This document shows positions 6,301 to 63,116 of a DNA stretch of 64,000 bases, one piece after another. The stretch lies in the sequence record MW879341.1. The stretch is one strand, 5' to 3'. Below the pieces are notes generated by a model. That model worked only from the letters and a program-made list of their open reading frames with translations, was not told the DNA's origin and did no database searches. Within the stretch, counting starts at the first letter, position 1. Every line of letters starts with the position of its first letter. A program made the position numbers and the translations under genes.

Positions 6301-6354
6301 CGGCATAAACTCCTACCCTCCACCAAACGGTGAGGGGTAGGGGTAGTTATGCTG
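6301..6354. terminator. Bidirectional terminator (hairpin flanked by CGGCATAA...TTATGCTG)
   Basis: Hairpin cctaccctccacc-aaac-ggtgaggggtagg between convergent genes. Confidence 0.75.
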
Positions 6355-7338
6355 TTAATTGATATTTGGTGCGTTTACGTTCGCAGACGAATTGATACCC
6401 GCGCAAGTAATCAGGCCAGTAACTGTCATTCCGTTCGTTACATTCAATGCACCTTCGATACGCATGTTTCCTTTTGACACCATCCCCTTCGAGTTACCCG
6501 AGTAGCCCGTAGAGATATTACCTACAGTGACGTCACCAGTAAAGGAAGCATTTGGCGTATCCATAAAGAAACGTTTAGATGCTTTACCGGTAAACTCGTC
6601 ACACTCAACATCGATTGTCTGCGCTTTAACTTGGAAGAGTTTTGTTTCCAGTCCGATAAGTTCAGCAGCTTTAGCGATGATGTTGTTTTTGTCTAGTGTC
6701 AGTAGCGTACCAAAGCTATTCTTCAATACCCAGATAGCTTCAGTGGAGTCCAGTGAGATATAGTTGCCAGTGTCATCAGCGAGCACTACGTGAGCCTCAG
6801 CGAGATTGAACTGGAAGACATACCCTACTGGCTCTCCTTGCGTCTTACACGTTCTCAGTGTGATCTGCTTCGTGTGTGTGGAGATCTCGAAGGTGTGCAT
6901 GTTAGATGGATCTACAGTCACACCATCCTTAGTCCCTTTCGTTGCATCTGGGTTATTGTTAAACCCATAAACGATAGTTTCTAAGCGTCGAAGGTCATTG
7001 TCTAACCCGAGGTCATCCCAGTAGTATTTATCCTGGTCAGCGAAACGATAAATCTGAACACGCGTATTACGACGAACATCAGGGGGAGTAATACGGTTAC
7101 TCCCCCAACGTAGCCAGGTTGCTTTCACCGTGGTGTCGGTTGTGGTTGCCGTGGTATACTCTTTCCCCTGGTTATCCTTACCCTTTGCTTCTAACTGTTG
7201 TGCATCCGATACTACAGCACCAGACATCCCCACACTTGACTCAGCGAGAGCAACGAGTAGTACATCACTACCTAACTCTTTGTCCTCAGCAGCTGTGCCG
7301 ATGGATACCCGTTTGAATTCTGAGCTGAGTTCTTGCAT
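6355..7338 (-). CDS. Baseplate central spike / puncturing protein (phiKZ gp164-like)
   Basis: OB-fold-like N-terminal half, then beta-helix-type short repeats (VTVGNI..MRIEGALNVTNGMTVTGLITCAGI). Start moved to ATG 7338 (MQELSSEF); ORF track extends to 7386. Confidence 0.65.
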   Translation of the reverse strand: MQELSSEFKRVSIGTAAEDKELGSDVLLVALAESSVGMSGAVVSDAQQLEAKGKDNQGKEYTTATTTDTTVKATWLRWGSNRITPPDVRRNTRVQIYRFADQDKYYWDDLGLDNDLRRLETIVYGFNNNPDATKGTKDGVTVDPSNMHTFEISTHTKQITLRTCKTQGEPVGYVFQFNLAEAHVVLADDTGNYISLDSTEAIWVLKNSFGTLLTLDKNNIIAKAAELIGLETKLFQVKAQTIDVECDEFTGKASKRFFMDTPNASFTGDVTVGNISTGYSGNSKGMVSKGNMRIEGALNVTNGMTVTGLITCAGINSSANVNAPNIN

Positions 7339-7577
7339 ATCCCACCCATTAAGTAAAAAAGTATTCTGTCTTCCTATTATTTGCAAAGGTTATCGTACCT
7401 ACAACACTTTCTGGATACACCAGAAAGGGAATGGGTTTCTATATATTACTTATAATAGGGGTATATTAAATACCCCTTAATTAATCATCTTATTATCTAT
7501 TTAAATACAAAAATACAGAGAACATTTAAAAGTATTGATCAGGGTTATCCTATAGAGTAAACCTTCGGAGCACCACA

Positions 7578-10049
7578 ATGAGAATTCGCAAGCTGGAACT
7601 GGCTGGCTACATTCGTTTGATCTACGCTGGCATCAAACGGATTGTCTACGAACCAGAGTCAGAGTATCAGTTAGTCATCGGAACAAACGGCTCAGGTAAG
7701 AGTTCACTGATTGCCGAACTGTCACCCTTACCGGCATCTAAGCAAGACTTTCTGGTCGGGGGTTACAAATACGTCGAGTTAGAACACAATGGTCGTAGCT
7801 ACACCGTTAAGTCTGAATTCTCACACGGGAACAGACACACCTTTATCGTAGACGGCGAAGTCTTAAACGATGCAGGCACAGCAGCGACACAGAAAGAACT
7901 CGTACTGGAACACTTTGGGTACGATAAAGACTTACATGATCTTATCACCGGTGAAACGAAGTTCACCGCTATGTCAACTCAACAGAGACGTGATTGGATC
8001 TCTCGTGCTTGCAGTAGTGACGTGACTTACGCGTTAGGTTTGTTCAACCGACTCAAGTCCGCTGCCCGTGACGCCATTGGTGCACGCAAACATGCAGAGA
8101 CCCGTTTAGCTGTTGAGTATAAAGGTCTGTTTTCTGACGATGAGTTAAATGCCCTACAAGTGCGTATAGACGAGCTGACGACGACCATCACTGAACTGAT
8201 GTATTCGGTTGACCAGAACGCGTTACCTCGTGTGGATGCTTCTCAGCGCTTAGAAGAGGCATTGGCAGAACTGCGCTCGATTGCAGAAGACCGTGTACTC
8301 AAAATGGACCTGACTACATTGCAAGGGGAAGTCTCATTAGAGAACCTGGGCGATAAAGTAAGATCGTTGGCTAGTGAGTTGGGGAATATCGAACAGTTCC
8401 TCACTGCACGCCGTCGTGAGTTCGTTGAATTAGAAGACACGCTCCAACAGTTAGCCGGGACAGGTAATAACAGTCTCCAAGACGAATTGGGTCAACTGAA
8501 CGAGAACCTGAAAGCGTTCTACGAACACCGTATCGACTTTGACTTCGGTGAGACAGACTTCATCCACCTTTATCGTGTTGCTGAGAATATCGACAACGCT
8601 TTAACCGATAAGCTATTAGCCTTACCGCCTAACCCTGGTAAGTGCTATAACAAACACAGCTTAGAGGAAGCCCAACGTAAGAACGATGAGTTGGTGGGTG
8701 CTAAGAATGTGAAGTCCACAGAACTGGCTCGTTTGAATGCACGTAAGGAAACTATCCTGGGTGCTGAGAAAACAACCTGCCCTAGCTGCGGTTATATCTG
8801 GGTACCGGGTGTGTCAGAACAAGACCTCCGTGTTATCAATGAGAAGATCGAGTTACTGGCTGCTCAGTTACAACAGGTTAACGAAGCCTTGCAACGTAAT
8901 GGCGTGTGGCTGGAAGAATTACTGGAATGGCGTAGACTGTTTACTGACTTCCGTAACCTCTTACAGTTAAACTCAGTGTTGGCACCTTTGTGGAAAGAGT
9001 TCATCGTTAATGACTTGATCTACGAAGACCCAAATGGTTGCGTGCATTTGTTCTATCGTTGGAAAGATCAACTGAAGGCGTTGGCTGAGCGTACTCGCTT
9101 AGAGCATCGCATTGAAGAAATCAATGTGGTCATCAAACGTGCTAATGAAATCAGTGGTGGTGGTTCTACAGCTGTGTTGACTACCCGTGCTAAACAGTTA
9201 GAGGTCGAACTCACTGAACTGAGTCGTCGTGAAGTGGAGACTCGCAATCAGTACGAGTATTACTCTCGCTGTGTGTCACTTGCTGTCGAGTGGCAGAGTC
9301 TGACTGACAAACTGTACGGTGCTGTAAATAAAGTCAACGAGTGTGCTAAGGTTTCACTGAAGGCACAGGTTAACGATCACTACCGTCAGATCATCGGTAG
9401 ACATCAGTCCGAACTAGCACAGCTGTCTTACCAACTCAACGAGAAAAAGTCCGCTAAAGAAATCGTTGCTTCCTTAGAACGCCAGCGCGATGAGTTACTA
9501 CAGAAAGAGGAAGACTTCAAACTTCTGATTGCTGAACTCTCTCCAACCAGTGGAATGATTGCTGACCAGCTCAGTGGGTGTATCGATGCGTTAGTCGAAC
9601 AGATGAACGACTATATCTCTTGCGTCTGGACATATGACCTGATTGTGATGAGCTGTGGTTTAGACAATGCCGATCTGGACTACAAGTTCCCGATGGAAGT
9701 GAAGTCTCGACCTAAACTGATTCCTGATGTCTCTAAGGGTTCAGGTGCTATGAAGAACATCGTGGACTTTACTTTCGTGTTGGTAGTTATGAGTTTCCTG
9801 GATTTGAAAGGATACCCACTATTCCCAGACGAGTTAGGTTCTACGTTTGACCCAGAACACCGCATGCGTTTAGTAGGCTTCTTTAAACAGTTGGTTGAGT
9901 CTCGTCGTACGTCTCAGATCTTCTATATCTCCCATAACCCAGAAGCACACGACACTTTAATCAGTGCTGACGTGTTGGTGATGGATTCTGCTAACGTGGG
10001 TGAAGTCCCAGGCTCTAACCAGAACGTGACATTTGAATACGCGGCATAA
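7578..10049 (+). CDS. sbcC: SbcC/Rad50-like SMC ATPase (823 aa)
   Basis: Walker A GTNGSGKSS, long coiled coils, CPSC zinc hook, signature SKGSG, Walker B/D-loop LFPDELGSTFD. Confidence 0.92.
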   Translation: MRIRKLELAGYIRLIYAGIKRIVYEPESEYQLVIGTNGSGKSSLIAELSPLPASKQDFLVGGYKYVELEHNGRSYTVKSEFSHGNRHTFIVDGEVLNDAGTAATQKELVLEHFGYDKDLHDLITGETKFTAMSTQQRRDWISRACSSDVTYALGLFNRLKSAARDAIGARKHAETRLAVEYKGLFSDDELNALQVRIDELTTTITELMYSVDQNALPRVDASQRLEEALAELRSIAEDRVLKMDLTTLQGEVSLENLGDKVRSLASELGNIEQFLTARRREFVELEDTLQQLAGTGNNSLQDELGQLNENLKAFYEHRIDFDFGETDFIHLYRVAENIDNALTDKLLALPPNPGKCYNKHSLEEAQRKNDELVGAKNVKSTELARLNARKETILGAEKTTCPSCGYIWVPGVSEQDLRVINEKIELLAAQLQQVNEALQRNGVWLEELLEWRRLFTDFRNLLQLNSVLAPLWKEFIVNDLIYEDPNGCVHLFYRWKDQLKALAERTRLEHRIEEINVVIKRANEISGGGSTAVLTTRAKQLEVELTELSRREVETRNQYEYYSRCVSLAVEWQSLTDKLYGAVNKVNECAKVSLKAQVNDHYRQIIGRHQSELAQLSYQLNEKKSAKEIVASLERQRDELLQKEEDFKLLIAELSPTSGMIADQLSGCIDALVEQMNDYISCVWTYDLIVMSCGLDNADLDYKFPMEVKSRPKLIPDVSKGSGAMKNIVDFTFVLVVMSFLDLKGYPLFPDELGSTFDPEHRMRLVGFFKQLVESRRTSQIFYISHNPEAHDTLISADVLVMDSANVGEVPGSNQNVTFEYAA

Positions 10050-10089
10050 AAGAAATGAGGAGGAGCCCGAAAGCTCCTCCTTTATGCCG
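10042..10089. terminator. Bidirectional terminator
   Basis: CGGCATAAA ... ggaggagc-ccgaaa-gctcctcc ... TTTATGCCG between convergent stops. Confidence 0.78.
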
Positions 10090-10695
10090 TCACTTCGCGT
10101 TTGATACCACGATCTGTTCTAACGTGTTCAATTGCGTCTGTAGATTGGCGATGGTTTGGTTTGCAGCAACTAACTGAGCACGTTCAGTTGTCCGGTTCTT
10201 GATCTTCGCTTGACGCGCTTTCTCAAAAGCCGCAGCTTGTGTAGCACTAACGGAATCTGACAAGGCAACATTGTGAATGGTCACGGTTGCCTCTACGCCG
10301 ATGGTGTCACTTGCCAATGAGGACATTTTCTGAACCAAGTCATCCAGTGGTAAGCTGTCAGGCAGAGCCCCCAAGTTTAAGCTCAGGATTTTCTGACCGA
10401 ATGCAATCGCACTTACGTCGGGATAGGACTTGATATACGTTGTCGGTACGTAGATCGTTGGTGCATCGTCAGAGAACAACGTTACCAACATCGCACCTTC
10501 AGCTAAGTCACTCTGATACTGCTCAGCGGTTAACCCTGCCGGAGAGTAATAACGATCCCACACTGAAACGTGTTGGTTTTCGATGTCTTTGAACTCACGC
10601 ACTGCGATACAGGTATAGATTGCTCCAGCCTGTGTCGTGAAGGGCGTTAACAGTTCAAAGGTACCTCTGGCTTCCGGTGGTGGGATTATATTCAT
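10090..10695 (-). CDS. Conserved phiKZ-like virion protein (201 aa, C-terminal coiled coil)
   Basis: Coupled to the upstream 436-aa gene (1-nt gap). Confidence 0.6.
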   Translation of the reverse strand: MNIIPPPEARGTFELLTPFTTQAGAIYTCIAVREFKDIENQHVSVWDRYYSPAGLTAEQYQSDLAEGAMLVTLFSDDAPTIYVPTTYIKSYPDVSAIAFGQKILSLNLGALPDSLPLDDLVQKMSSLASDTIGVEATVTIHNVALSDSVSATQAAAFEKARQAKIKNRTTERAQLVAANQTIANLQTQLNTLEQIVVSNAK

Positions 10696-12007: not shown

Positions 12008-12067
12008 CGTGGGGGACTCCTCAGGTTAAAAGGGAAAAGAATACAACATATAATTTAGGGGTCAATA

Positions 12068-12525: not shown

Positions 12526-14010
12526 ATGACGGAGCAACGTAAACTAATGTCAGATATCAATGCAGTTCTTTATAGCGATGGCGGTGCTGAACCGCCTCGT
12601 GGTCCGGGTGGTAGTGGTCTCTTTGGTTACACTTATAAAGAGACCACAGTCGCTCCGAACGACGATAGTTGGCATCCCACTACTGAAGGGTATTACACTC
12701 TGAAGAATATACCGGCTACCGCACGCTGGGTACAACCCTTAGAAGTATTAGAAGGGATTGTTAGTTACCCAATGCCGGTTACCAACAATATCGCTGAACT
12801 CGGTGCAGCTATACTTGCATTTGAATTGATCGTGAAGCATGGATGGAAATCTGTGTTTATGCGTCCCGATTCTGAGTACGTGCGTGAGAACTTCGAGAAG
12901 TCTTTGGACAAATGGCGACAGAATGGTTGGCAGACTGCTAGCCACGAACCCGTTAAGAACCAAGCACAATGGGAAGCTTTATACCAACTCAAGGTAGAAG
13001 TGGAACGTGCTGGATCTACCGTTCAATGGCGATGGGTGAAAGGTCATAGCGACGATCCTGGTAATCAGCGTGCTGACCAACTGGCCACTCAGGGCAAAGG
13101 ATATGCTAAGCTGGCTAAAGCTATCCGTGAGACTCGTTTTACTGAGGCTCTGCCGGTAGTGCGTGGTGAGATCATCAAAGTCCCTGGCCCAAATAAACTT
13201 CTCGACATGCCTCGTTGGTACTTCACCAATGACTCAGGCGCAACACATAAGAACGCTACTGGACACTCTGTCTACTACGGTGGCAGTCATGGCAAAGACG
13301 ACGAACTGTTCGCTAAACCAATGGCTGACTCAACCTACGTGGTAGCATTGTTGAAAGAGGCCGACCCTGTGTTGGAATCTATACGTGCTAAGCAATACGC
13401 TCTGAATCCTGACAACCTCTGCGAAATGGTTATCGGACACTTAGACAACATTCTTACACCTCGTGTGTATGATCCGTTGTTTGTAAATGGCACTCGGTGG
13501 ATTGATCCTCATCCAGGCACGAACGACTTACTGTCTGGCGGGGAGCAATTACTTACTCGGGAACTCACCAAACCTCGTTTAGCTCTGAATGCAATTACCA
13601 CACTCGTACAGGCTGAGTCGTTACTAAACGACCACCTAGCAGGCACCTTGAAGGATGTCTATACGTGTGACATTACAGACAGTCTTTACGACCTGACTGA
13701 AAAGAAAGGGAAAATCACCTGTAAGCTCAAGAAAGACATTTCAACTGCCGTGAAAACTATTGCTGCTAATTTAGAGTATGGTTCTAAAGGTAAGGTGAAA
13801 GGGAAGCTCAAGACTCGTTTAGTATTGGGTCAAGACTTACCACGTCGTAACACATTGTCGCACCTGGCAGCATTGCAGCCTAAGGTCACAGTGTTGAGCT
13901 GGTCGAAAGATCCAGGTACTGTCTATTTTGCTACAGTGGTGGAAGCCGGAGGAGATGCGAGTATTTGGATGGGTTACCCGGCCAATTACCGTGTTATACC
14001 AAAGGAGTAG
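12526..14010 (+). CDS. rnhA: RNase H with long C-terminal extension (phiKZ gp155-like)
   Basis: YSDGG, TNNIAELGA, DSEYV and WVKGHSDDPGNQRADQLA RNase HI catalytic motifs. Confidence 0.93.
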   Translation: MTEQRKLMSDINAVLYSDGGAEPPRGPGGSGLFGYTYKETTVAPNDDSWHPTTEGYYTLKNIPATARWVQPLEVLEGIVSYPMPVTNNIAELGAAILAFELIVKHGWKSVFMRPDSEYVRENFEKSLDKWRQNGWQTASHEPVKNQAQWEALYQLKVEVERAGSTVQWRWVKGHSDDPGNQRADQLATQGKGYAKLAKAIRETRFTEALPVVRGEIIKVPGPNKLLDMPRWYFTNDSGATHKNATGHSVYYGGSHGKDDELFAKPMADSTYVVALLKEADPVLESIRAKQYALNPDNLCEMVIGHLDNILTPRVYDPLFVNGTRWIDPHPGTNDLLSGGEQLLTRELTKPRLALNAITTLVQAESLLNDHLAGTLKDVYTCDITDSLYDLTEKKGKITCKLKKDISTAVKTIAANLEYGSKGKVKGKLKTRLVLGQDLPRRNTLSHLAALQPKVTVLSWSKDPGTVYFATVVEAGGDASIWMGYPANYRVIPKE

Positions 14011-14014: not shown

Positions 14015-14407
14015 ATGTCAACATTGTACTGGCCTACTGCGCAGTCGCAAAGCAGAGTAGGGTGCGTCTTTTGCAAGATGCTCCCGAAACGCGTAAAGCG
14101 TATTGTCGTTTTAGCTAGCCTCTACGGGTTTATCGTATCCGACCAATTCGATGAATTCGTAGCCACGAAGAAATTAAACAAAGAGCTTAATCTGTGTGAC
14201 GATCCCCAGTCTCTACGACTGCCGTTACATCTGGGTGGCGTTCTTTGGAATTCGGAGGGGAGTGGTAAAGTACAAGTTCCTAATGAACGCCTGGCACTTT
14301 ATAAGCTGGCCACGTCTATCGTGCAGCGTACCCCTGCAAGCATGCGATACGGTGATCGTGTCGAGATGCGTGCCGATATACTGCGCGTTCTGTACGCGGC
14401 TGTTTAA
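14015..14407 (+). CDS. Hypothetical protein (130 aa)
   Basis: AGGAG RBS then ATG 14015 (MSTLYWPT). Confidence 0.6.
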   Translation: MSTLYWPTAQSQSRVGCVFCKMLPKRVKRIVVLASLYGFIVSDQFDEFVATKKLNKELNLCDDPQSLRLPLHLGGVLWNSEGSGKVQVPNERLALYKLATSIVQRTPASMRYGDRVEMRADILRVLYAAV

Positions 14408-14417: not shown

Positions 14418-14468
14418 GACATAGACCCCTCCGATTCCCACTGCTGGGGTCGGAGGGAGTTTATGCTG
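14418..14468. terminator. Bidirectional terminator
   Basis: GACATAG...ccctccgattcccactgctggggtcggaggg...TTTATGCTG between convergent genes. Confidence 0.7.
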
Positions 14469-15278
14469 TTATTGCAGATGCTTAGTCAGGAACGTAACGT
14501 CATCACGAACACATTCAACAATACGTTCGAACAGATACTGGTACTCTGCGTAGAACTCAATCTCTGCTGCCATGGTGTAGGTCAGAGAAACGAGTTTGTC
14601 TACGAAGTTACCAGACGGACGGTATTCGAAGCGCGGTTCGTTCAACTTACCGATCAGAACTTGCAGAAGGTCATCGATCTCTTTAACTTTCTTACGGACG
14701 TCATCAATGGTGACATTCGCATTGGTTGCAGCGATCTGGTTGATTGTGTCGATTACAGGAGCCCAGTCTTTGTTACGACGGATAGCGCGGGAGTAACGAC
14801 ATTCAGGTTGACCACCCTTAGCAATCTTAGACAATTGCTCACGAGCACGCTTAGAACGATTAACATCGAAATTAACGTGCTGGTTGATGCTCTCCATAGC
14901 GGTAGGGTCATTCAGTACCACCGCCAGCCATTTAGCAAATGGGTCCAGCAGATCACGATACAGTGACTCTGGTACTACACCGACATCTTTCATTGTGGTC
15001 ATCGCCGTAGCGTAGTCCACACTCAGTTCTTTAGGGAACTTGAGTTTCAGTTGGGTCAATGACGTGTAGTCAGCTTTCTCAACCAGGGGTAAGAAATTGC
15101 GACCGTCGATAGCCAAAGAAACATTACTGTTTAAAATGTTCCCCAATAATTTGCTGATAGCGTCAGACGCATCACCAAAGAATCCGGCCAGACGACCCAG
15201 TGTCTTCTCGCTTGGTCGGAACAAGGCGAGTGACTCAACTGTAATTACGTTCTTTTGAATCTCAATATTTTTTAACAT
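14469..15278 (-). CDS. Virion (head) structural protein, phiKZ gp153-like
   Basis: 269 aa; lies between RNase H and UvsX as in phiKZ; N-terminal TVE-S candidate processing site. Confidence 0.6.
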   Translation of the reverse strand: MLKNIEIQKNVITVESLALFRPSEKTLGRLAGFFGDASDAISKLLGNILNSNVSLAIDGRNFLPLVEKADYTSLTQLKLKFPKELSVDYATAMTTMKDVGVVPESLYRDLLDPFAKWLAVVLNDPTAMESINQHVNFDVNRSKRAREQLSKIAKGGQPECRYSRAIRRNKDWAPVIDTINQIAATNANVTIDDVRKKVKEIDDLLQVLIGKLNEPRFEYRPSGNFVDKLVSLTYTMAAEIEFYAEYQYLFERIVECVRDDVTFLTKHLQ

Positions 15279-15344
15279 TCCATTACCTTACTATGAAGAA
15301 TACGTAGCGTCTCATAGGAATTATTAACAACGAGGAGTTGTTTG

Positions 15345-20755: not shown

Positions 20756-20802
20756 CAGCATAGAACCTACCCCTCACCGTTTGGTGGAGGGTAGGTGTCT
20801 AT
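20756..20802. terminator. Bidirectional terminator
   Basis: CAGCATAG + CCTACCCCTCACCGTTTGGTGGAGGGTAGG; this core is the exact reverse complement of the 6.3-kb copy. Confidence 0.75.
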
Positions 20803-21252
20803 TTATTCGTTTTCGAGTCTTTCCAGGAACTTATCGTAGCTATCGTCTTCGATGCCGATGAAGTCCTCACCTGGTCTCAGATTGTGTTCTGGTAACAGGG
20901 CGACTTGTGCTTCTGGGTCCATCGTAGCCACATCAACGATAACACCCTCTTCAGTGCTACGCATGAATGGGTTACCGGTCTTACCAGTATGTTGGTTCAG
21001 CTGTGCAATCAGTACCGCAGCAGAACGATCGTCGTCGCCACGTTTCTTATCTTGCTGGAGACGTTTCAAGACTAAGGCTTGTCTGTCCATACTGTCTAAC
21101 GTTTGGTTGATGGCACCGACAACCTTAGGGTCGTCTGGAGTTGGATCACCTTTGTCATCACCCACTTGTGAACCCATGAGCTTAGTAACGACGCGCATGC
21201 GTGTCTTCTGGGTGAACGCTAGGATACCATCATTATCTAATACTTCGCTCAT
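20803..21252 (-). CDS. Hypothetical protein (149 aa)
   Basis: GAGG RBS; divergent from the promoter at 21275. Confidence 0.65.
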   Translation of the reverse strand: MSEVLDNDGILAFTQKTRMRVVTKLMGSQVGDDKGDPTPDDPKVVGAINQTLDSMDRQALVLKRLQQDKKRGDDDRSAAVLIAQLNQHTGKTGNPFMRSTEEGVIVDVATMDPEAQVALLPEHNLRPGEDFIGIEDDSYDKFLERLENE

Positions 21253-22357: not shown

Positions 22358-22367
22358 GGAGTTTGCT

Positions 22368-23492
22368 ATGACTAGCTATGCAGACACAGTGGTCCAAGCA
22401 TTGGCCGTCGGGTCGGCTGCGGGAGCAAAGGCTGCTGGTAATATCACCACCGATGTTTCAAAGAGCATTCCTAAGGTTGCGTCTAGTATCTTTGAATCTG
22501 GACCTAAGGATGCATTGGTCGCTGTAGACAGTTATGGTAAACGTGCTGTCAGTTTCATCAACCAAGAAGCTGCGGGTGTCAAAGGGAAGTTCGATGGATT
22601 CTTCTCTAACATCCGAATCCTCTCAACTGCTAAGGACACACTCAAGTCAGCAGCACAAACTGCAACCAGTGCACTCAAAGCTGTAAATGATGCCAAGAGT
22701 CAATTGGAGAACTATACCGGGTTAAACCTGAGTTCATTAGGAGCGGCGAAAGCTAGCCTTAATAATGCAGCAATCACTACTCTGGCCAATGTCTCAGGAT
22801 ACGACGTCAATCGCGTTATGCGGGACGGTGAGGCAATCCAACGTATTGCATCGAATGCAGACCTGGGAAGCGTCAACGGGCTTTATACTGCGGCTAATAG
22901 GCTGTTAGGTGTAGGTTCTGTTGGTAACCTGGTAGATATGCGTTCAGATGGGTCAGTATTGGGTGCATTGATGTCTCAAGCTGGTCAATTGGGGATGACT
23001 GATCTCTTTGACAAGCTCTGGGATAAAGTCTCAGCGGATGACAACCTGTATGGTGGTTCTACTGCACGCTACAGTGCTAACCAAACCGTAGCGTCTGTTT
23101 TACAGAATGGCGATTTGGTGATGCTGAACAAACTCATTGATAAACTCGGTGGGTCTGCGATCTTACAACAGTATCCTGATGCGTTCTCACGGTTCTTGAA
23201 CAACTACCGTATAGATTACGACTCCACGCCAGCTGACTACGATACAATCCGTAACAGTATCACTACCACCTTTAACCGCATTGATCCTAACTGGATGACG
23301 CTTGCGGCTAATGGGGTGACTGAGTATCAACTAGCACCGTTTGCTAATGCGACAAACATCGTGATGGCAATCTTTGGTTTCCGTAAAGGTGCTGACGTAC
23401 GTGCTGCAACTAGCGCACTGATTGCCAGTAGCTATCCTAAGCAGTCAGCTAGTTCATTGTTCCGTGCTTACTACCCAAACATGCCATTGTGA
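22368..23492 (+). CDS. Virion structural protein (about 374 aa)
   Basis: GGAG RBS then ATG 22368; Ala/Ser-rich N-terminus; adjacent to tail-tip genes. Confidence 0.55.
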   Translation: MTSYADTVVQALAVGSAAGAKAAGNITTDVSKSIPKVASSIFESGPKDALVAVDSYGKRAVSFINQEAAGVKGKFDGFFSNIRILSTAKDTLKSAAQTATSALKAVNDAKSQLENYTGLNLSSLGAAKASLNNAAITTLANVSGYDVNRVMRDGEAIQRIASNADLGSVNGLYTAANRLLGVGSVGNLVDMRSDGSVLGALMSQAGQLGMTDLFDKLWDKVSADDNLYGGSTARYSANQTVASVLQNGDLVMLNKLIDKLGGSAILQQYPDAFSRFLNNYRIDYDSTPADYDTIRNSITTTFNRIDPNWMTLAANGVTEYQLAPFANATNIVMAIFGFRKGADVRAATSALIASSYPKQSASSLFRAYYPNMPL

Positions 23493-23544
23493 CATAAAAC
23501 CCTACCCCTCCACCTTTTGGGTGGGAGGGTAGGAGATTATGCTG
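23491..23544. terminator. Bidirectional terminator
   Basis: GACATAAAA-ccctacccctccacc-tttt-ggtgggagggtagg-agaTTATGCTG. Confidence 0.75.
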
Positions 23545-25527
23545 TTAGCCAACTGCACGAACGTTAGACAGAGCAGAGATAACACGACCTGGTAATGAAC
23601 CACCAAACCAACTCGCCGCATGTGATACGGAGAAATAGCTATCGAACTCAAGTTTTACACGACGCCAGTTACGAGCCATCTGACGAGTCTTATAGATCTG
23701 ATCTGCTAGACCCAGGCTACCCAATACAGCAAGGTAGTCAGTGAATGCAGTATCGTCACCAAAGAACGCACGGTTCAAACCGCCTGGAGTGATCATATCA
23801 AACGGCGTTGACGTAGTGCCCAGTGGAACGTGCATGATACTTGACAGGTCCGCCACTGTGAACTGCACGTCGATACCTAAAGGTTCGTCGTCCTGTGTCC
23901 AACCAACGTTACCCACACCACGCGTTACGGAGATACTTTCAATCATACCCAGACGAGTCTGAGCACGACCTTTATCGTAAAGCTCTACGAGGAAAGGTGT
24001 ACCGTAAGACTGAGCACCGGCTGAACGAGGTAAACCACCCACTAAGATCATTGAGAGTGGTAACAGTAGTCTCTGGAAACGTGACAGTTTATTCCCATAG
24101 AGACTGCGCAGCTGTATGGTGTAGTCCATGCGTGGTAATGAAGCAGTTGACGTATCCCACACTTTAGGAATGTCCGTCAAGGCGTTACCTGCCAGTGCCA
24201 TCAGTCCTGACATCTGAACACCATCGACCGCACCTTTAACAATCTGCGTAGCGGCGTCTACCGCAGCATCGATAACGCCGATACCGGTTTTACCATCAGC
24301 CATGTTCACACGAGCCTGACGAACACCACTACTGATGCTGTTGAATTTCTCACCCAAATCCGGTGTACGGGTTGAGTTAGAGAAACTCTCGTTAGCAGTA
24401 CCGGCTTCGTGAATGTAGAACGTTACAAATTGAGCACCGTCACGAGCTTCAGCCAGGGCGAAGGTTTTAAACTTATCCACCACGCCAGCATCTTTGAACA
24501 GTTCCTCACGGTTGGAGTCCTTACCATCCGGGTCAGTAGCGTTCTCACCAGCAGGAGAATTGAACCAACGCTGTAGAGCAACCTTCAGCGGTGTACCTGT
24601 TAACGCATTGATCATCTCGCGGTGAGTAGAACCTGGGAACTGAGTCAGTCGATTACGCCATGCCTCATCATCAACCAACGCTGTAGAAGCAGCGACGTCA
24701 GCCAGAGCCTCGTTCCAGATATCCGCTAAACGCTGAGCACGAGTAGACAGCGAGTAGATATCAATCGCGCCGTTCTTACTCCACAGAGAAGGAATCATCT
24801 TAGCATACTGATCGAACTGTCCAGCAGCGGTATCGAAGTTAACATTCTCGTAGATAATCTGGTTTGTAGTTGGGTCGCGTACAGGCATGCCCTGAGCGTC
24901 CCTACGAGCCACAGCAAGCTCAGTATTCTGCTGAGGAATACCAAAGCCTAGGTTAGCCGCTAAGCGGTTAGCAAAGCTCTGTACGGCGTTCCAATAGATC
25001 GGCATGTTAGGACGCAGATAATAGAAACGAGTCGACGGAGTACCAGCCAATGTCTTCAGCGTCTTACCAATTAGAATAAATGGCATAAACGGAAGAATGG
25101 CTACGTAACCTGCAAGTTTACCAGCGTCGTAGAAAAGGGAACCTGATTTACCAGTACGCACCAACATACCAGCATCAGAGTTATAGAAGCTACTGAAGAA
25201 ACTTACCAGTCCAGTATACTCGGGTGTACCGAAACGCATACTGATCGTACGGGCGTTATCGTCAATGGCCTCAGAGTAGTAGTCACCCATCCCGCGAGAC
25301 ACCCATTCAAACAGGCGTTCTCCCTTAGGGTCACAGTAACGAGTATATTGAGCTGGCGGGTTCATTGCGCGATTGCCGCCAAGCGTTGTATCCTCGTACT
25401 TATAGAAGTTAGAGGTTGCAGTTCGACGAGAGATAACAAATTCGTCGAAGCTACCCGGTTCCGTCAAGAACATCTGACGTATCCACCGGTTATCCTCTTT
25501 TAAAAAACGCGTTTCAGCTGCCATCAC
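23545..25527 (-). CDS. Tail-tip/baseplate hub protein (phiKZ gp182-like, 660 aa)
   Basis: Directly downstream of the tape-measure gene; C-terminal LGMIESISVTRG hub-like motif. Confidence 0.65.
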   Translation of the reverse strand: MMAAETRFLKEDNRWIRQMFLTEPGSFDEFVISRRTATSNFYKYEDTTLGGNRAMNPPAQYTRYCDPKGERLFEWVSRGMGDYYSEAIDDNARTISMRFGTPEYTGLVSFFSSFYNSDAGMLVRTGKSGSLFYDAGKLAGYVAILPFMPFILIGKTLKTLAGTPSTRFYYLRPNMPIYWNAVQSFANRLAANLGFGIPQQNTELAVARRDAQGMPVRDPTTNQIIYENVNFDTAAGQFDQYAKMIPSLWSKNGAIDIYSLSTRAQRLADIWNEALADVAASTALVDDEAWRNRLTQFPGSTHREMINALTGTPLKVALQRWFNSPAGENATDPDGKDSNREELFKDAGVVDKFKTFALAEARDGAQFVTFYIHEAGTANESFSNSTRTPDLGEKFNSISSGVRQARVNMADGKTGIGVIDAAVDAATQIVKGAVDGVQMSGLMALAGNALTDIPKVWDTSTASLPRMDYTIQLRSLYGNKLSRFQRLLLPLSMILVGGLPRSAGAQSYGTPFLVELYDKGRAQTRLGMIESISVTRGVGNVGWTQDDEPLGIDVQFTVADLSSIMHVPLGTTSTPFDMITPGGLNRAFFGDDTAFTDYLAVLGSLGLADQIYKTRQMARNWRRVKLEFDSYFSVSHAASWFGGSLPGRVISALSNVRAVG

Positions 25528-42239: not shown

Positions 42240-42269
42240 AGGTAGGACTTCGGTCCTACCTTTATGCCG
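42240..42269 (+). terminator. cUUCGg hairpin + TTTATGCCG terminator
   Basis: AGGTAGGAC-TTCG-GTCCTACCT-TTATGCCG; core identical to the copy at 52239. Confidence 0.78.
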
Positions 42270-42287
42270 CTCATTAAGGAGTCTTAA

Positions 42288-49833: not shown

Positions 49834-49870
49834 CAGTAGCTGCCTTCACGGGCAGCTACTGCTTTATGCC
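49834..49870 (+). terminator. Hairpin + TTTATGCC terminator
   Basis: cagtagctgcc-ttcacg-ggcagctactg-cTTTATGCC. Confidence 0.75.
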
Positions 49871-49882
49871 CTCAATCTAAAG

Positions 49883-52238: not shown

Positions 52239-52268
52239 GGTAGGACTTCGGTCCTACCTTTTATGCCG
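52239..52268 (+). terminator. cUUCGg hairpin + TTTTATGCCG terminator
   Basis: GGTAGGAC-TTCG-GTCCTACC-TTTTATGCCG. Confidence 0.78.
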
Positions 52269-52309
52269 TTTCATCATTTTTTCAGATATATATCACATTC
52301 ATGAATAAA
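52266..52309 (+). promoter_or_regulatory. Extended early-type promoter, copy 1
   Basis: CCGTTTCATCATTTTTTCAGATATATATCACATTCATGAATAAA. Confidence 0.7.
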
Positions 52310-53063: not shown

Positions 53064-53106
53064 CAGCATAAAAGCCACTCTACCCAAAAGGTAGAGTGGC
53101 TATGCT
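53064..53106. terminator. Bidirectional terminator
   Basis: CAGCATAAA-agccactctacc-caaaa-ggtagagtggct-ATGCT between convergent genes. Confidence 0.78.
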
Positions 53107-53115
53107 TACGCCTTT

Positions 53116-53439: not shown

Positions 53440-53445
53440 TATCTA

Positions 53446-54354: not shown

Positions 54355-54366
54355 TTAAGGCTCTCC

Positions 54367-55263: not shown

Positions 55264-55277
55264 TAAGTCTACCTCTC

Positions 55278-56120
55278 TTAACGGTTGTTGTAGTGGTAGT
55301 AAGCCACACCGACGATGTTGTCAGCGACGATACCGGTCTGGACAAACACACGGTCGTAATCGCGGTTTGCACCGGCTACGCTGGCCGTGGTTGCATCAGA
55401 GATATAGTTACTGTTCGCAGCACGCGGGTAGTCTGGTACACCACGGTCGGTCAGAATCTGACGGAGCGAATCCCAGTTGTTACTGTAGTTCGCCCAGCTA
55501 CCGAAGTAGTTCTTGTAGTCACTGAAGTCGATACCCCAGGTCAACAGGCCGGCAGAGTTCAGGTCATCCACTTTCTTATCGGCGTGATTCAACACGGTCA
55601 ATGCGGTGGCGGTGATCTGAATACCCAGGTCTGGTTTACCACGATATACGCGCAGATTGACTGCTCCGATATATGCCGGTGAGGTCGGAACTGCGGTGAT
55701 ATTTGAGTTCTCGATTCGGTCTGCCTGACTAGGGTAGCTGAAGCCATTGTTCTGAATATCCCAGGTATTCAGATTCAGACCAACTTGCAGACAGATCTGT
55801 GGTAGCATCTGGTGGATGTTACGTCCGGCATAGTTCTGCAACTGAACGTAGTTGTTCAGACCGTTCAGAGTATCGCTTGGCAGGATAACCTTGGACAGAT
55901 CGATACGGTTGTAGAACACCACAAACGAACCCATGTATCCGTCACCCTGCTGACCACGAATACGCGCTGAGGTATTATGCATACCGTTCGCAGCGTTAGG
56001 CGTCACCGCAGTGATCGCCTCAATCGTACAGTTGTCGTTAGACAGGGGTGGTTGGATCTGGGGGTTAGCTGCCGCAATCAGGTCATAGACCAGAGCACGG
56101 GAGTCCTTACTGTATAACAT
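55278..56120 (-). CDS. Paralogous virion/tail-associated protein, array member (280 aa)
   Basis: GYMGSFVVFYNRIDL; GVAYYHYN. Confidence 0.72.
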   Translation of the reverse strand: MLYSKDSRALVYDLIAAANPQIQPPLSNDNCTIEAITAVTPNAANGMHNTSARIRGQQGDGYMGSFVVFYNRIDLSKVILPSDTLNGLNNYVQLQNYAGRNIHQMLPQICLQVGLNLNTWDIQNNGFSYPSQADRIENSNITAVPTSPAYIGAVNLRVYRGKPDLGIQITATALTVLNHADKKVDDLNSAGLLTWGIDFSDYKNYFGSWANYSNNWDSLRQILTDRGVPDYPRAANSNYISDATTASVAGANRDYDRVFVQTGIVADNIVGVAYYHYNNR

Positions 56121-56130
56121 AACTTACCCC

Positions 56131-57012
56131 TTAACCGATTTCAGACGGGTCGAGTGGTTTGCTGTAGTGCAACAGCATCTCACCACGAACGTTGGTGGTT
56201 TTGGTCGTATCGAGTGTCAGCGCGATAACGTACTGATAACGCTCGTTGTTGGCGTACTGGCGATCCTTAGCAGGACCGTTGTAAGCTACAGTAGCGTTAG
56301 TCAGGTTAGCCGGACCGGCCGCCAGACTGTCACCGATAACCCACGGGTTAGCAACTGACGCGTACGGCTGTTTACCATTGATGATGGCCAGGAGTGAGTC
56401 ATCCAGCTTCGCACCCACTGCAATACCTTTAAGGGTATCGTAGGAATCGCTGAAGTCAGCACCATAGACCAGCGCCTGTCCGAGACGAACAGTGGTGTCT
56501 TCAGATACTGGGTAGACGATACCATCCAGTGAGGTTTTCTGAACGATGTCGTCCAGTACATCATCACCTTTGGTCAGGAAGAAGGTCCACTCACCAATCC
56601 AACCCAGCGAATCCGGTGCAGCTTTCAGAGTAACCTGAGCTACCTCGTTTTCATAGGTAATCGGTTGGTCAACGATGTCACCCGGTACGAAGTTCAAACC
56701 GTATACGGTATTGAACGCCGATGCCAACTTGGCAGTGGTGTCGGGTTGAGGACCTTTGATACGATCGCCGATCATGGTAACCAGGTCGTTGAGGTCCAGA
56801 CGGTTATAAAGGAATACGTTGGTACCAGTCCAGGTAGCACCGGCATTAGCAGTGATACGGATAGCAGTATTCTGACTGATATCCTTACCGTTCCACTTGC
56901 CATTCGTCGGCTGAGGCTTACTGAACGTCATTTGGGACATGACAACGTTCGATCCATTTAAGGAGTTAACGTTATCAATGATAGTTTGTTTAACGTCACT
57001 ATAGAGTGCCAT
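56131..57012 (-). CDS. Paralogous virion/tail-associated protein, array member (293 aa)
   Basis: WTGTNVFLYNRLDL; LDGIVYP; GEMLLHYS. Confidence 0.72.
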   Translation of the reverse strand: MALYSDVKQTIIDNVNSLNGSNVVMSQMTFSKPQPTNGKWNGKDISQNTAIRITANAGATWTGTNVFLYNRLDLNDLVTMIGDRIKGPQPDTTAKLASAFNTVYGLNFVPGDIVDQPITYENEVAQVTLKAAPDSLGWIGEWTFFLTKGDDVLDDIVQKTSLDGIVYPVSEDTTVRLGQALVYGADFSDSYDTLKGIAVGAKLDDSLLAIINGKQPYASVANPWVIGDSLAAGPANLTNATVAYNGPAKDRQYANNERYQYVIALTLDTTKTTNVRGEMLLHYSKPLDPSEIG

Positions 57013-57021
57013 TAGTCAACC

Positions 57022-57819
57022 TCATAAGTAATAATGCAGATAGATCGTGCCGACATAATTCGGATCATCGACCCCGGTGATAGTCGAAACGCGCGCGTAT
57101 TTCTTATTAGCGGTGGTCACTTGCGAGGTATTCGTAAAGTGAGTTAACTGCGCACCACTAAGTTTGATATCTCCTAAACCACGCTCTTTCAGTATCTGAC
57201 GTAACGCAGCATTATTAGCATTGTTAGTCAACACGCCCGCCGGAGTTGTGCGGATAGCGTATTGGTCAGAACTGCAATCCCAACCGTAGGTCAGGAGATC
57301 AAGGCACTTACGTCCGTCTGGGTCTTGAGGGTGTTTAAGCACCGTCAATTGACGCGCACGCAGGAGAGCCAGGTTACGAACCATTGGGATAATCTTAACC
57401 AATACACGCCCTGTGTACTGAATGGACTTCGACCCAGGCGTTAACCAGAAATTCGTACCACCCGTATACACGTCGGTGCGGAAATCGTTGGGGTCTAAGT
57501 TCAAACCGTAGTTGGCATTGATCAGTTGAGACGCCTCACGCATTGTCATACTTCGGTTAACCGATAAGACAGGCGGTTGGTTCTTAAAGAGCGTTTGTAA
57601 ATCCAGTCGGCGCACGTTGACGTTGATATCACCAACCAAACCATGCGATTGTCTACCAGTCAAGGTTACAGTCGTATTCGGTTTAGTGGCACTACGTTCA
57701 TTGAGTGCTGTGACTTTACGGACGCGTACGTTGTTCGGGGTCAGTGGAATCTTTGGATTGTACGCAGTGTTGATACTATCGCAAAGGTTCTCCAGCGGCG
57801 TTTTAGAATAAATAGGCAT
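57022..57819 (-). CDS. Paralogous virion/tail-associated protein, array member (265 aa)
   Basis: GLVGDINVNVRRLDL; GTIYLHYY. Confidence 0.72.
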   Translation of the reverse strand: MPIYSKTPLENLCDSINTAYNPKIPLTPNNVRVRKVTALNERSATKPNTTVTLTGRQSHGLVGDINVNVRRLDLQTLFKNQPPVLSVNRSMTMREASQLINANYGLNLDPNDFRTDVYTGGTNFWLTPGSKSIQYTGRVLVKIIPMVRNLALLRARQLTVLKHPQDPDGRKCLDLLTYGWDCSSDQYAIRTTPAGVLTNNANNAALRQILKERGLGDIKLSGAQLTHFTNTSQVTTANKKYARVSTITGVDDPNYVGTIYLHYYL

Positions 57820-57833
57820 TCGTTACCCCTTTA

Positions 57834-57855
57834 GTGGGGAGCTTTCACTCCCCAC
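57834..57855 (-). terminator. Hairpin inside the array (partial terminator or processing stem)
   Basis: gtggggag-ctttca-ctccccac between 57862 and 57819. Confidence 0.45.
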
Positions 57856-57861
57856 CGCTGA

Positions 57862-58794
57862 TTACGCGTTGTAGTGCAGGTAGAGATCGCCCGCGAAGTT
57901 GGTGCACTTGGTGTCATCCAGAGTGAACACAACTACGGTGTTGAAGTTGGTGTTAGCGTTTGCCTGCACTTCCAGTTCAACCGGGTCAGTAGACGGGGTT
58001 GACGGGTCGGCACGAGTAGAACCTGCGAACTTGATGGTCGCGCCACGAACGTTGTAGTCCGCTGCGTCATCACCGGCGTGCCACAGTTCAGGCACAACTT
58101 TGTTCAGCTCTTTGGCCAGTGCGGTATCTTCGATAGCGCCGCCAGTTGCCAGGGTAGACAGGAAGGTACGGATGCTGTTGCAGTCTACGCCGTAGGAGTA
58201 GATGTAAGCCTGACCTTTCATGGTACCGTCAACTGGGTAGTGCAGACCATCCAGACGAGTTTTGGTTACAACCAGGTTCAGACGCTCACCAACGTCAGCA
58301 TCTTCGCCGACAGTAACATCCAGCACACCGAAGTAAGCCAGAGAGTCATCAGCGATAGTGATGGTAGCGTGAGCAACCGGTGCAGCTTCGGTCAGTTCAG
58401 CAACAGTTGCACTTACCACTTCTTTCTTGTCGATGGCCAGGCCGTAACGGGCATTCAGGCGGTCTATCAGATCCAGGGTGGTTTTAGCGCCTTTAACATC
58501 GAGGTTAACGGCAATGTTCTTGAACAGTTTGCTGATGTCCAGACGATCGTACGCCAGGGTTACGGAACCCACGTATGGAGAACTACGAGTCGCGGTACAC
58601 AGCAGTTCGGTGTTCCAGTCTTTCTTGACTTCACCTTCCGCTGGCTCACCTTCAGTTGGTACAACCACAGCCGGCTTACCGAACACAACCTGAGTGGTGT
58701 TGATATCGATCGAGAGTTTAGTATCAGGATCGGTGTTGGTTTCGTTAACCAGATCCAGGACCAGAAGGTTGGATGCTTTGTTATACTTACCCAT
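57862..58794 (-). CDS. Paralogous virion/tail-associated protein, array member (310 aa, strongly optimised codons)
   Basis: PYVGSVTLAYDRLDI; LDGLHYP; GDLYLHYN. Confidence 0.75.
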   Translation of the reverse strand: MGKYNKASNLLVLDLVNETNTDPDTKLSIDINTTQVVFGKPAVVVPTEGEPAEGEVKKDWNTELLCTATRSSPYVGSVTLAYDRLDISKLFKNIAVNLDVKGAKTTLDLIDRLNARYGLAIDKKEVVSATVAELTEAAPVAHATITIADDSLAYFGVLDVTVGEDADVGERLNLVVTKTRLDGLHYPVDGTMKGQAYIYSYGVDCNSIRTFLSTLATGGAIEDTALAKELNKVVPELWHAGDDAADYNVRGATIKFAGSTRADPSTPSTDPVELEVQANANTNFNTVVVFTLDDTKCTNFAGDLYLHYNA

Positions 58795-58806
58795 TGTTCA
58801 TTTCCT

Positions 58807-59652
58807 TTAGATGTTTAAGGGACTGTTGTATTGAATGTAGACGCGCCCTGCCAAGTTAGTGCAATACAATGCTAACTCAACAATGCAGACCGTATCGAAG
58901 TACGGGTCGGTAGGGAGATCTGACGTATTTGGCCCATGGTAAACCACAGTGGACTCAAACAAGTTCCAGTTGGCCGGTGAACGGAAGATCGTCCATTTGT
59001 CACCCGTTACCGAGAGGATGTTCATCAACTCAGCAGTGGTGATGTTGGTACCACGTTTAGCATACGGTCGCATCGCTTCGGTGAAGTCAGTGCGATATGC
59101 GTAAATCGGTGCCTGTCCGTTATTCGTATTGAAGTACGGATAGTCGAAGAGGCTAGCAGTGGATTGCGGCTCGATTACATCTGACAGAATCGCGTCGCCT
59201 GCCACAGTACGCATGGTTAGCGTACCAACCCAAAGCAATGAGTTATCAAGTAACTCAAACGTCACACGGTTGTTTACTTTATCGACTGGTGCTAAACGCA
59301 CTTCATCTTTAGTAAGCTCGATACCGGTGAATTGCTTCAGAGCGCCCAAACAGTCGTGGTTATTTTCCACAGTGATTGGAGAGAGTGGCAGTTGGAAATC
59401 GTTCTCACTGTTTACACCGACGATCAGCGAGATATCGTAACGGTTGTAGAACAGGTCGACAAATCCGTAAACCTTTGCGTCGTTACCAGCACGCAACTGG
59501 ATGGCAGTGTCCTTATCTGGGAACTGCGCCAGTTCTTCAGGTTCCAGTGCACGAGGACCTAAGAACGTCATCTCATCAACGGTAAGGCTGACTTTATAGA
59601 GAGCGTTCAGGTAATCGAGGATATACTGTTTTCCATTAGGATACAGGAACAC
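58807..59652 (-). CDS. Paralogous virion/tail-associated protein, array member (about 281 aa)
   Basis: GGAGG RBS then GTG 59652 (MFLYPNGKQYILDYLN); YGFVDLFYNRYDI; GRVYIQYN. Confidence 0.72.
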   Translation of the reverse strand: MFLYPNGKQYILDYLNALYKVSLTVDEMTFLGPRALEPEELAQFPDKDTAIQLRAGNDAKVYGFVDLFYNRYDISLIVGVNSENDFQLPLSPITVENNHDCLGALKQFTGIELTKDEVRLAPVDKVNNRVTFELLDNSLLWVGTLTMRTVAGDAILSDVIEPQSTASLFDYPYFNTNNGQAPIYAYRTDFTEAMRPYAKRGTNITTAELMNILSVTGDKWTIFRSPANWNLFESTVVYHGPNTSDLPTDPYFDTVCIVELALYCTNLAGRVYIQYNSPLNI

Positions 59653-59653
59653 G

Positions 59654-60469
59654 TTAAACCTCCGGAATCCAAGGAATAAGTAAAGACCCAACCCAGTCAG
59701 CAGTTTCTAATTTGTCAATACGTAATACCATCGTATCGCCAGACTTCTCCTGCGTACAGGTACCGCCTTTGATGTTGACTTCACCAATCGCTACAGCACC
59801 GGCGTCTTTGTATACAATGTTGAGGTTAACCACACCATTGATCGCATCAGCCAGATCGGCGTTAGTAGCACGCCCGCCATAGAAGTTGGTAAATGCGCTT
59901 TGGATCTCAACGAAGTTATACCCCCACGCGACATATTCCAGTCGACGCTTACCCGTTTTAGAGAATGGTTCTTTAACAATGTCCAGACCTTGTGCAGTCA
60001 CTAAGGTGGCAATGTTCGGACGAGACTTCACCACACGCACGTCAACAGAACCCGACCACATCAAGCAGCTTGGTTTTGTTTCCAGCGTGACGATATAGTC
60101 ATCACCGAGGTCTTTTACCGAGACATCCACAATGTCGTCTTTGGTTAAGAAGACACCGTAGGTTTTATAGAATGCCGGAAGGATATCAGACAACCACGAT
60201 GCGCCTGTGAACTGAACCAGTAGGGTCTGATTCTCAAACGCGTGGTCTAACGAAAGACGTTGATATTCTACATCTACCGTACCCTGATACCCCTGCCGCA
60301 TAAGAGCATAAACACGAACTCGGGCATTTTGCAATGCACCGGGGGTGGTTATCTCCTGTGGAATCCCAAAGCCTACATTATTCAGACTTAGGGGATTGAC
60401 GACGATGGTGTTCTCCGTATTAATGGTATCCAACATCGTGTCGGTGGAGCTTTTCTTGTACATACTCAT
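59654..60469 (-). CDS. Paralogous virion/tail-associated protein, first array member (271 aa)
   Basis: GYQGTVDVEYQRLSL; AWGYNF. Confidence 0.7.
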   Translation of the reverse strand: MSMYKKSSTDTMLDTINTENTIVVNPLSLNNVGFGIPQEITTPGALQNARVRVYALMRQGYQGTVDVEYQRLSLDHAFENQTLLVQFTGASWLSDILPAFYKTYGVFLTKDDIVDVSVKDLGDDYIVTLETKPSCLMWSGSVDVRVVKSRPNIATLVTAQGLDIVKEPFSKTGKRRLEYVAWGYNFVEIQSAFTNFYGGRATNADLADAINGVVNLNIVYKDAGAVAIGEVNIKGGTCTQEKSGDTMVLRIDKLETADWVGSLLIPWIPEV

Positions 60470-60529
60470 AGTGAACCCTTCAATGTGAATAGTAGTAGGG
60501 CAGTGTTCTTCAACATATTATCGGGGATA

Positions 60530-60573
60530 CCGTTTCATCATTTTTTCAAATATATACCACCTCTATGTATAAA
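60530..60573 (+). promoter_or_regulatory. Extended early-type promoter, copy 2
   Basis: CCGTTTCATCATTTTTTCAAATATATACCACCTCTATGTATAAA. Confidence 0.68.
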
Positions 60574-60593
60574 CAAAGAAGGAATATACAGAA

Positions 60594-61010: not shown

Positions 61011-61020
61011 GGAAAATATC

Positions 61021-62798: not shown

Positions 62799-62807
62799 GA
62801 GGTGGCT

Positions 62808-63065
62808 ATGTTAAAGAAAACGATTAAGGTCAACAAGATCCGACAGATTGTTACAACCTTAGACGGCGATGGTAAGACACCACTGTTCCCTAAGGGTTCT
62901 GTGATTGCTGCGGTGTTGATGTATGAGTCTGTCGATTTAACGGACTTCTATAAAGCTGAGTCAGATGGTCCATTGCAGATTGAAACTGAGATCACGCATT
63001 CTGGTCGATTGGTTCAAGCACTCATCTACGGTAAACATACGCAGTTGTTACTTCAACCTAAATAA
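62808..63065 (+). CDS. Hypothetical protein (85 aa)
   Basis: GAGG RBS then ATG 62808. Confidence 0.6.
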   Translation: MLKKTIKVNKIRQIVTTLDGDGKTPLFPKGSVIAAVLMYESVDLTDFYKAESDGPLQIETEITHSGRLVQALIYGKHTQLLLQPK

Positions 63066-63070
63066 AGCAA

Positions 63071-63116
63071 ACCCTCACCGTTAATTCGGTGGGGTCTGTT
63101 ATGCCTATTCTTTTTT
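63071..63116 (+). terminator. Hairpin + TTATGCC + U-tract terminator
   Basis: accctcaccg-ttaatt-cggtggggt-ctgTTATGCC-tattcTTTTTT. Confidence 0.72.

Follow-up and report, generated by a model that had tools for sequence, protein, structure and literature searches.

Transcription termination in the giant bacteriophages related to phiKZ has been studied in two phages of Pseudomonas. In phiKZ itself, 133 termination regions were mapped by ONT-cappable-seq (ONT, Oxford Nanopore Technologies), and 61 termination sites share a motif in which a stem-loop is followed by TTAT, 5'-BCCYCCCCHWWDGGGRRGGBYTTATKYYGT-3' (Putzeys et al. 2024, microLife, PMC10914365). Six bidirectional terminators lie between convergent genes, and many copies of the motif are classed as intrinsic terminators by the program ARNold (PMC10914365). 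Motif A of phage 201phi2-1 (n=59) resembles the phiKZ motif, and a second motif, B, lengthens the stem (PMC11512511). Eight 201phi2-1 terminators were placed between two reporters in uninfected Pseudomonas chlororaphis; all of them terminated transcription, four better than lambda T0 (PMC11512511). Here we describe hairpin-TTATG elements in a stretch of 64,000 nucleotides (the window), which corresponds to positions 62001-126000 of the record MW879341.1 (272,635 bp) of Erwinia phage pEa_SNUABM_54, a phage of Erwinia amylovora. A query of 10 kilobases (kb) from the window was 100% identical to this record. It is very probable that these elements are phiKZ-type transcription terminators. Both the motif and its terminator role are already on record for phiKZ and 201phi2-1, so the finding is not in itself new; in pEa_SNUABM_54 the elements were previously undescribed. 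An earlier reading of the window, referred to below as the original prediction, had flagged ten of them as a candidate termination signal specific for the phage RNA polymerases (RNAPs). Coordinates are those of the window unless indicated otherwise.

The elements of pEa_SNUABM_54 have a defined anatomy, are enriched and strand-specific, and carry the tail of the published motif. For genome-wide counts, the whole record was assembled from six annotated stretches, genes were called by a codon-usage score and checked against the record annotation, and hairpins were predicted with RNALfold. The motif was permitted to overlap the stem end, as folds often absorb the CATA and TATG flanks into the stem. 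As a plain word, TTATGC is not enriched in the window (26 observed versus 26.4 expected), so that the non-random feature is its position after hairpins and not its frequency. TATG is located at the stem end of 52 of the 93 hairpins at gene 3' ends with a folding free energy (dG) <= -15, and of 39 of the 55 with dG <= -20, where chance would give about 4%; TTAT without the G is found at a further 11 and 6 gene-end hairpins, respectively. Conversely, a hairpin with dG <= -18 precedes 54 of 1464 TATG words throughout the genome, whereas eleven control tetramers gave 135 of 25639 (Fisher p ~1e-24).

The tail was described with a matrix of 58 intergenic sites anchored on TATG. The next base is a pyrimidine (selected for), followed by Y in 54/58, G in 31/58 and T in 36/58 sites, and one to four T precede ATG, which yields the consensus T(1-4)ATG-Y-Y-G-T. 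Both the 58-site matrix and the ten flagged sites agree with a GC-rich stem-loop followed by TTAT-K-Y-Y-G-T on the transcribed strand. The stems differ between sites, with compensatory changes at 8/8 consensus pairs, indicating that the RNA hairpin shape is what is kept. CATA stands ahead of the hairpin at 16 of the 18 annotated convergent junctions, most of which also have TATG behind it; the gene caller had given 22 such junctions, four of them probably miscalls, and this check of junction folds took the annotated ones. The uninterrupted U-rich tract of about 7-8 nucleotides (nt) that is typical of a canonical intrinsic terminator is not present, the tails reading T(1-4)ATGYY. Of the strong hairpins of pEa_SNUABM_54, 8/83 have at least six T among the first 8 nt past the stem, and a terminator scan demanding at least five T in 8 nt caught one or two sites only.

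With respect to transcription, the tail comes behind the hairpin. At junctions between two + strand genes, it is present on the sense strand only in 30 cases, on both strands in 2 and on the antisense strand only in 1. Of the convergent junctions, 17 have the motif, 9 on both strands, and hairpin-linked TATG occurs at 0 of the 21 divergent junctions of the genome. The element is thus found after gene ends, in sense orientation and bidirectionally at convergent genes, and not upstream of a gene to be driven, divergent junctions included, as a late promoter would be. This distribution fits transcript ends, and neither promoters nor a symmetric DNA element.

Mapped RNA ends are available for the relative 201phi2-1, with the eight termination coordinates printed in PMC11512511 as the test set. 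All eight are situated 7-8 nt past the stem, where the sequence is TATG(N)Y or its variant TATACC (CTTTATACC); seven of the terminators have exactly the former tail and one has the variant. Four of the coordinates coincide with matches of a covariance model built from pEa_SNUABM_54 sites (see below), each lying four bases before the match end. RNA 3' ends away from the motif, which the original prediction had named as the observation that would speak against it, are thus not what is seen in the nearest studied relatives; in 201phi2-1, 8/8 mapped ends fall in the tail. The proposal of a termination signal in a phage with its own RNAPs is therefore supported, both by the sense orientation past gene ends and by the 201phi2-1 3' ends inside the motif. 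Two of its qualifications were overstated. The tail does not come "instead of a U-tract", since its T(1-4)AT stretch amounts to a U-tract, albeit a short and interrupted one, and many phiKZ copies pass as intrinsic terminators in ARNold. Nor is the signal strictly specific for phage RNAPs, since the activity of the eight 201phi2-1 terminators in uninfected P. chlororaphis indicates that the host RNAP responds to it.

On the basis of these data, it is possible to outline how the elements may work. Each element pairs a GC-rich RNA hairpin, whose arms often read CCYCC...GGRGG, with a short interrupted U-tract past the hairpin on the transcribed strand and the conserved tail T(1-4)ATG-Y-Y-G-T. Convergent gene pairs have the tail on both strands, which on the + strand gives a CATA-hairpin-TATG palindrome; a single hairpin would stop both transcripts, and the CATA and TATG flanks lengthen the stem. 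By analogy with the mapped 201phi2-1 ends, transcripts are expected to end at the Y that directly follows TATG(C), 7-8 nt past the stem, a spacing that corresponds to the geometry of a hairpin-driven, factor-independent terminator. We infer from this analogy that the RNAs of pEa_SNUABM_54 end at these hairpins without the need of a protein factor. The motif would then be a reliable marker of transcription-unit ends in the unannotated genome of pEa_SNUABM_54 and in other phiKZ-like phages.

The motif is not confined to one phage. A covariance model was built from pEa_SNUABM_54 sites alone, using a 37-site subset, the MAFFT alignment of all 53 being poor; its counts are lower bounds, biased to the stem sequences of this phage. 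It gave 50 matches in the pEa_SNUABM_54 genome itself, 45 in Goslar, 36 in 201phi2-1, 32 in phiKZ, 6 in RAY and 2 in KpHz_2, and 0 in Escherichia coli K-12 (4.6 Mb), in T4 and in PA5oct, a jumbo phage that depends on the host RNAP. By direct inspection, the CATA-hairpin-TATG(C/T)YG arrangement was seen in 60 kb of RAY and of KpHz_2. When strong hairpins were counted on equal terms in sampled sequence of each genome, those with TATG next to the stem made up 40% in pEa_SNUABM_54, 53% in phiKZ, 35% in RAY and 39% in KpHz_2, as compared to 3% (2/74) in E. coli, where chance is 5%, and 14% in PA5oct, where chance is 10%. Four of the five sampled phiKZ-like phages thus have TATG adjoining 35-53% of their strong hairpins, Goslar being the exception with 17%, a value based on 1/6 hairpins only. 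Taken together, the model matches and the hairpin counts indicate that the motif accompanies phages equipped with multisubunit RNAPs of their own, whatever the genus of the host.

pEa_SNUABM_54 is such a phage. The window contains two neighbouring genes for RNAP beta-like proteins, 32205-33881 (phrog_2986) and 33881-38191 (phrog_3148). With tblastn, relatives of the larger one were found in 300 phage records, among them phiKZ-group phages, 201phi2-1, RAY and Goslar, all at identities of about 34% or less; the identity to the RNAP of the phiKZ group is about 31%. The best RNAP relative, about 34% identical, is that of Serratia phage KpHz_2. A homologue of GP123, the beta-like subunit of the phiKZ non-virion RNAP (nvRNAP), is encoded outside the window (genome positions 31773-33380, locus L002, 31% identity). 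Judged by these homologies, the phage encodes both a virion and a non-virion multisubunit RNAP of the phiKZ type, which bears out the assumption of phage-encoded RNAPs in the original prediction. As its RNAP relatives never exceed about 34% identity, pEa_SNUABM_54 is, on sequence grounds, a deep-branching, unclassified lineage of phiKZ-like jumbo phages with its own multisubunit RNAPs. In a megablast search of 10 kb against a phage collection it matched itself alone, with no close relative.

All ten hairpins of the original prediction were recovered, six at convergent junctions and four behind co-directional genes. A predicted bidirectional terminator at 6302..6356 separates the convergent genes 5062-6300 (+) and 6355-7338 (-); its hairpin (6309-6344, dG -25.2 / -20.7) is followed on the + strand by TTATGCTGT from 6347, with TATGC at 6348-6352, and on the - strand by TTTATGCCGC, with CATA at 6304-6307. 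The one at 10041..10090, between 7578-10049 (+) and 10090-10695 (-), has its hairpin at 10057-10082 within 9-nt inverted flanks, CGGCATAAA / TTTATGCCG, which are perfect as had been proposed; the + strand gene's stop codon and the left flank overlap. Three further putative bidirectional terminators combine CATA upstream with TATGC downstream of the hairpin: 14418..14470, between 14015-14407 (+) and 14469-15278 (-), with hairpin 14424-14461 and tails TTTATGCTGT (+) and CTATGTCGCG (-); 23491..23546, between 22368-23492 (+) and 23545-25524 (-), with hairpin 23500-23534 and tails ATTATGCTGT (+) and TTTTATGTCAC (-); and 53065..53112, between 52584-53063 (+) and 53116-53439 (-), with hairpin 53073-53101 and tails CTATGCTTAC (+) and TTTTATGCTGT (-). 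The sixth convergent junction, 20051-20755 (+) / 20803-21252 (-), harbors a candidate terminator at 20757..20810 (hairpin 20765-20796) with the full motif on the - strand (CTATGCTGTC) and TTAT without G on the + strand (TCTATTTATTCG). It is the exception to the TATGC that had correctly been noted downstream of the other five, having CATA upstream only. The prefix (C/G)(G/A)CATA, ascribed to all six junctions, holds for four; at 20756 and 53064 the sequence is AGCATA.

The four co-directional candidates are all on the + strand, and T(1-4)ATGCC follows each hairpin, in agreement with the original prediction. They are located at 42240..42271, 3' of gene 41478-42236 (hairpin 42240-42261 with a UUCG loop, tail TTTATGCCGC); at 49834..49873, 3' of gene 49186-49830 (hairpin 49834-49861, tail CTTTATGCCC); at 52239..52270, 3' of gene 51817-52230 (hairpin 52239-52258, tail TTTTATGCCGT); and at 63067..63108, 3' of gene 62802-63065 (hairpin 63067-63099, tail TATGCCTAT). 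The last three are followed by early-promoter-like boxes at 49883, 52282 and 63142, respectively. A putative variant with TTAT without G, absent from the earlier list, was found on the - strand at 2299..2320, where a hairpin 3' of gene 2329-4947 has the tail TTTATTCTGG. Two + strand hairpins with a UUCG loop, at 22312-22360 and 45690-45740, have no TATG tail; they share a CTAATC(C/T)ACTTCT box, followed by a long T-run about 12 nt past the stem, and a similar CTAACTTCT accompanies a third hairpin, at 48038. The two may represent a different terminator or promoter arrangement.

In the record, 319 of the 320 genes are annotated as "hypothetical". Among the products so annotated in the window are an SbcC-like nuclease subunit (7578-10049), an RNase H-like ribonuclease (12547-14010) and a UvsX-like recombinase (15345-16784). 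The region 53116-60469 (-) is a tandem array of nine diverged paralogous genes of 107-310 amino acids, with 20-35% pairwise identity (BLASTP), which forms a single tight operon without internal terminators.

Several points weigh against the interpretation as phiKZ-type terminators. About 25 of the 93 gene-end hairpins have neither TATG nor a T-rich tail, so the motif is not the sole way of ending transcripts. The 18 public runs that contain pEa_SNUABM_54 sequence are DNA and none is RNA; the 3' ends are therefore extrapolated from relatives with RNAPs of about 31-34% identity. Furthermore, 3' ends obtained by ONT-cappable-seq may also stem from processing, and the covariance model detects few sites in RAY (6) and KpHz_2 (2), although the motif is visible there on direct inspection.

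Beyond termination as such, it could be imagined that the TATG tail is read sequence-specifically by the phage RNAP as a pause signal. This would add to the terminator function and not replace it, and we consider it an unlikely extension. TATG is the core of the phiKZ late promoters, with G as +1, and is necessary, though not sufficient, for initiation by the nvRNAP (Yakunina 2015, PMC4666361). In a 2026 structure of the phiKZ enzyme, a GP123 pocket beneath the beta-lobe holds the four bases TATG of the non-template strand, positions -3 to +1 (PMC12809450). In an elongating nvRNAP, the GP123 homologue would bind the non-template TATG in this late-promoter pocket and the enzyme would pause when the RNA 3' end had reached the G or gone slightly beyond it, upon which the hairpin would release the transcript despite the short U-tract. 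The homologue of pEa_SNUABM_54 keeps 10 of the 16 listed pocket residues, and 1 more is conservatively replaced. The conservation of G, Y, Y, G and T at and beyond the mapped 3' end would not be required of a plain U-tract; with the A included, it is not explained by a weak RNA:DNA hybrid alone. A pause at the hairpin-proximal TATG is thus conceivable from the pocket, its residues and the conserved tail. In addition, the motif is common to phages of Pseudomonas, Erwinia, Serratia/Klebsiella and Escherichia and was not found in E. coli, T4 or PA5oct, and hairpin-free TATG is enriched upstream of pEa_SNUABM_54 genes. However, 201phi2-1 terminators with this tail worked with the host RNAP in uninfected P. 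chlororaphis, the transcribing complex is described as having an incomplete pocket (PMC12809450), and the same motif ends units that begin at early-promoter-like boxes and are presumably transcribed by the virion RNAP. The elemental pause consensus of E. coli is G-10, Y-1, G+1; the tail fits it partially in any register, and it is not used as support. The question of polymerase reading owes its interest to a tail that is kept at the single-base level across host genera and that holds the core word of the late promoter. Were such reading to occur, one four-base word would mark the starts and, with a hairpin ahead, the stops of phage transcription, and a polymerase-encoded, sequence-specific pause or termination signal would be conserved across the Chimalliviridae.

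The shared word also raises the possibility that the hairpin-adjacent TATG are late promoters starting at the G, either as outward-firing antisense start sites, the alternative offered in the original prediction, or as fused units of termination and re-initiation. TATG is indeed the promoter core in phiKZ (PMC4666361), intergenic DNA, which makes up 5.7% of the genome, contains 16% of all TATG, and a start at the G of the co-directional 42263 would produce a 22-nt leader with a ribosome-binding site. Moreover, 74 TATG without a hairpin face a downstream gene in the same orientation, many lying 20-60 nt before its start. The hairpin-linked copies are, however, missing from all 21 divergent junctions, where promoters must lie, which disfavours antisense starts in particular, and at the 17 convergent junctions a promoter would yield antisense RNA only, pointing into the end of the opposing gene. 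Several terminators have a separate TATG or early-promoter box a few tens of nt downstream, the published 201phi2-1 ends at these sites are 3' and not 5' ends (PMC11512511), and TATG alone does not suffice for initiation by the nvRNAP (PMC4666361). A promoter function of the hairpin-linked TATG is therefore very improbable.

Two other sequence elements are candidate promoters. At divergent junctions (for example 4948-5061, 12008-12067, 15279-15341, 32131-32204 and 60470-60593), hairpin-free TATG, often in the form ATAATATG(T), precedes the gene starts of either strand by 20-60 nt and is likely to be the late promoter core, as in phiKZ. An AT-rich box with a consensus near TCAGATATATATTAC then CTnTGTG occurs on the + strand at 21277, 41449, 42989, 49883, 52282, 60546 and 63142. 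About 22 intergenic copies are present in the whole genome, all on the + strand and often 15-40 nt past a terminator; they resemble the TTGAGATTTATATTAC-type boxes beside 201phi2-1 terminators. This box is probably the early (virion RNAP) promoter of pEa_SNUABM_54.

A processing or stability signal, with an endonuclease cutting the UAUG tail or 3' exonucleases stalling at the hairpin, would place the origin of the ends after transcription. Long-read complementary DNA (cDNA) 3' ends alone cannot separate termination from processing, and the phage encodes RNase-like proteins (12547-14010). Exonuclease trimming is expected to stop closer to the stem than termination does, and the 201phi2-1 ends, 7-8 nt past the stem, are at the usual termination distance. 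As the eight 201phi2-1 elements also lowered downstream reporter expression in a terminator trap (PMC11512511), post-transcriptional formation of the ends is very improbable. A role of the palindromes as DNA elements, whether cruciforms or binding sites for proteins of replication, recombination or packaging, might be suggested by the long perfect inverted repeats at convergent junctions and the SbcC-like gene in the window, but it is hardly credible, since the tail is on the sense strand only at 30/33 co-directional sites, so that the element is not symmetric as DNA, the stems vary with compensatory changes (8/8 pairs) and the placement tracks gene ends.

Interpreted as phiKZ-type terminators, the elements can be compared with four known systems. 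With the phiKZ late promoter they share the same four bases, and hairpin-free TATG stands upstream of pEa_SNUABM_54 genes too; the placement and orientation of the hairpin-linked TATG, however, match transcript ends, with none at the 21 divergent junctions. A canonical intrinsic terminator likewise has a GC-rich hairpin, a U-rich stretch and an RNA end about 7-9 nt past the stem, whereas the U-tract of the motif has just 1-4 U, followed by an invariant A-U-G and further conserved bases. In 201phi2-1, the hairpin is followed by CTTTATG(Y)YGT (in one case CTTTATACC), and the combination of motifs A and B has its counterpart in the upstream CATA of pEa_SNUABM_54, which likewise lengthens the stem; the 201phi2-1 terminators were validated in vivo with the host RNAP in P. 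chlororaphis, whereas the pEa_SNUABM_54 sites are known from sequence. phiKZ infects another host genus, its RNAP is only about 31% identical, its 3' ends are mapped and not predicted, and its tail mostly reads TATGT, whereas pEa_SNUABM_54 nearly always has G for the K, followed mostly by C (TATGC). Nevertheless, both phages have two multisubunit RNAPs, the elements are placed at gene ends and are bidirectional at convergent genes, the GC-rich stems have CCYCC/GGRGG arms, and TTAT-K-Y-Y-G-T of phiKZ matches the tail matrix of pEa_SNUABM_54 position by position.

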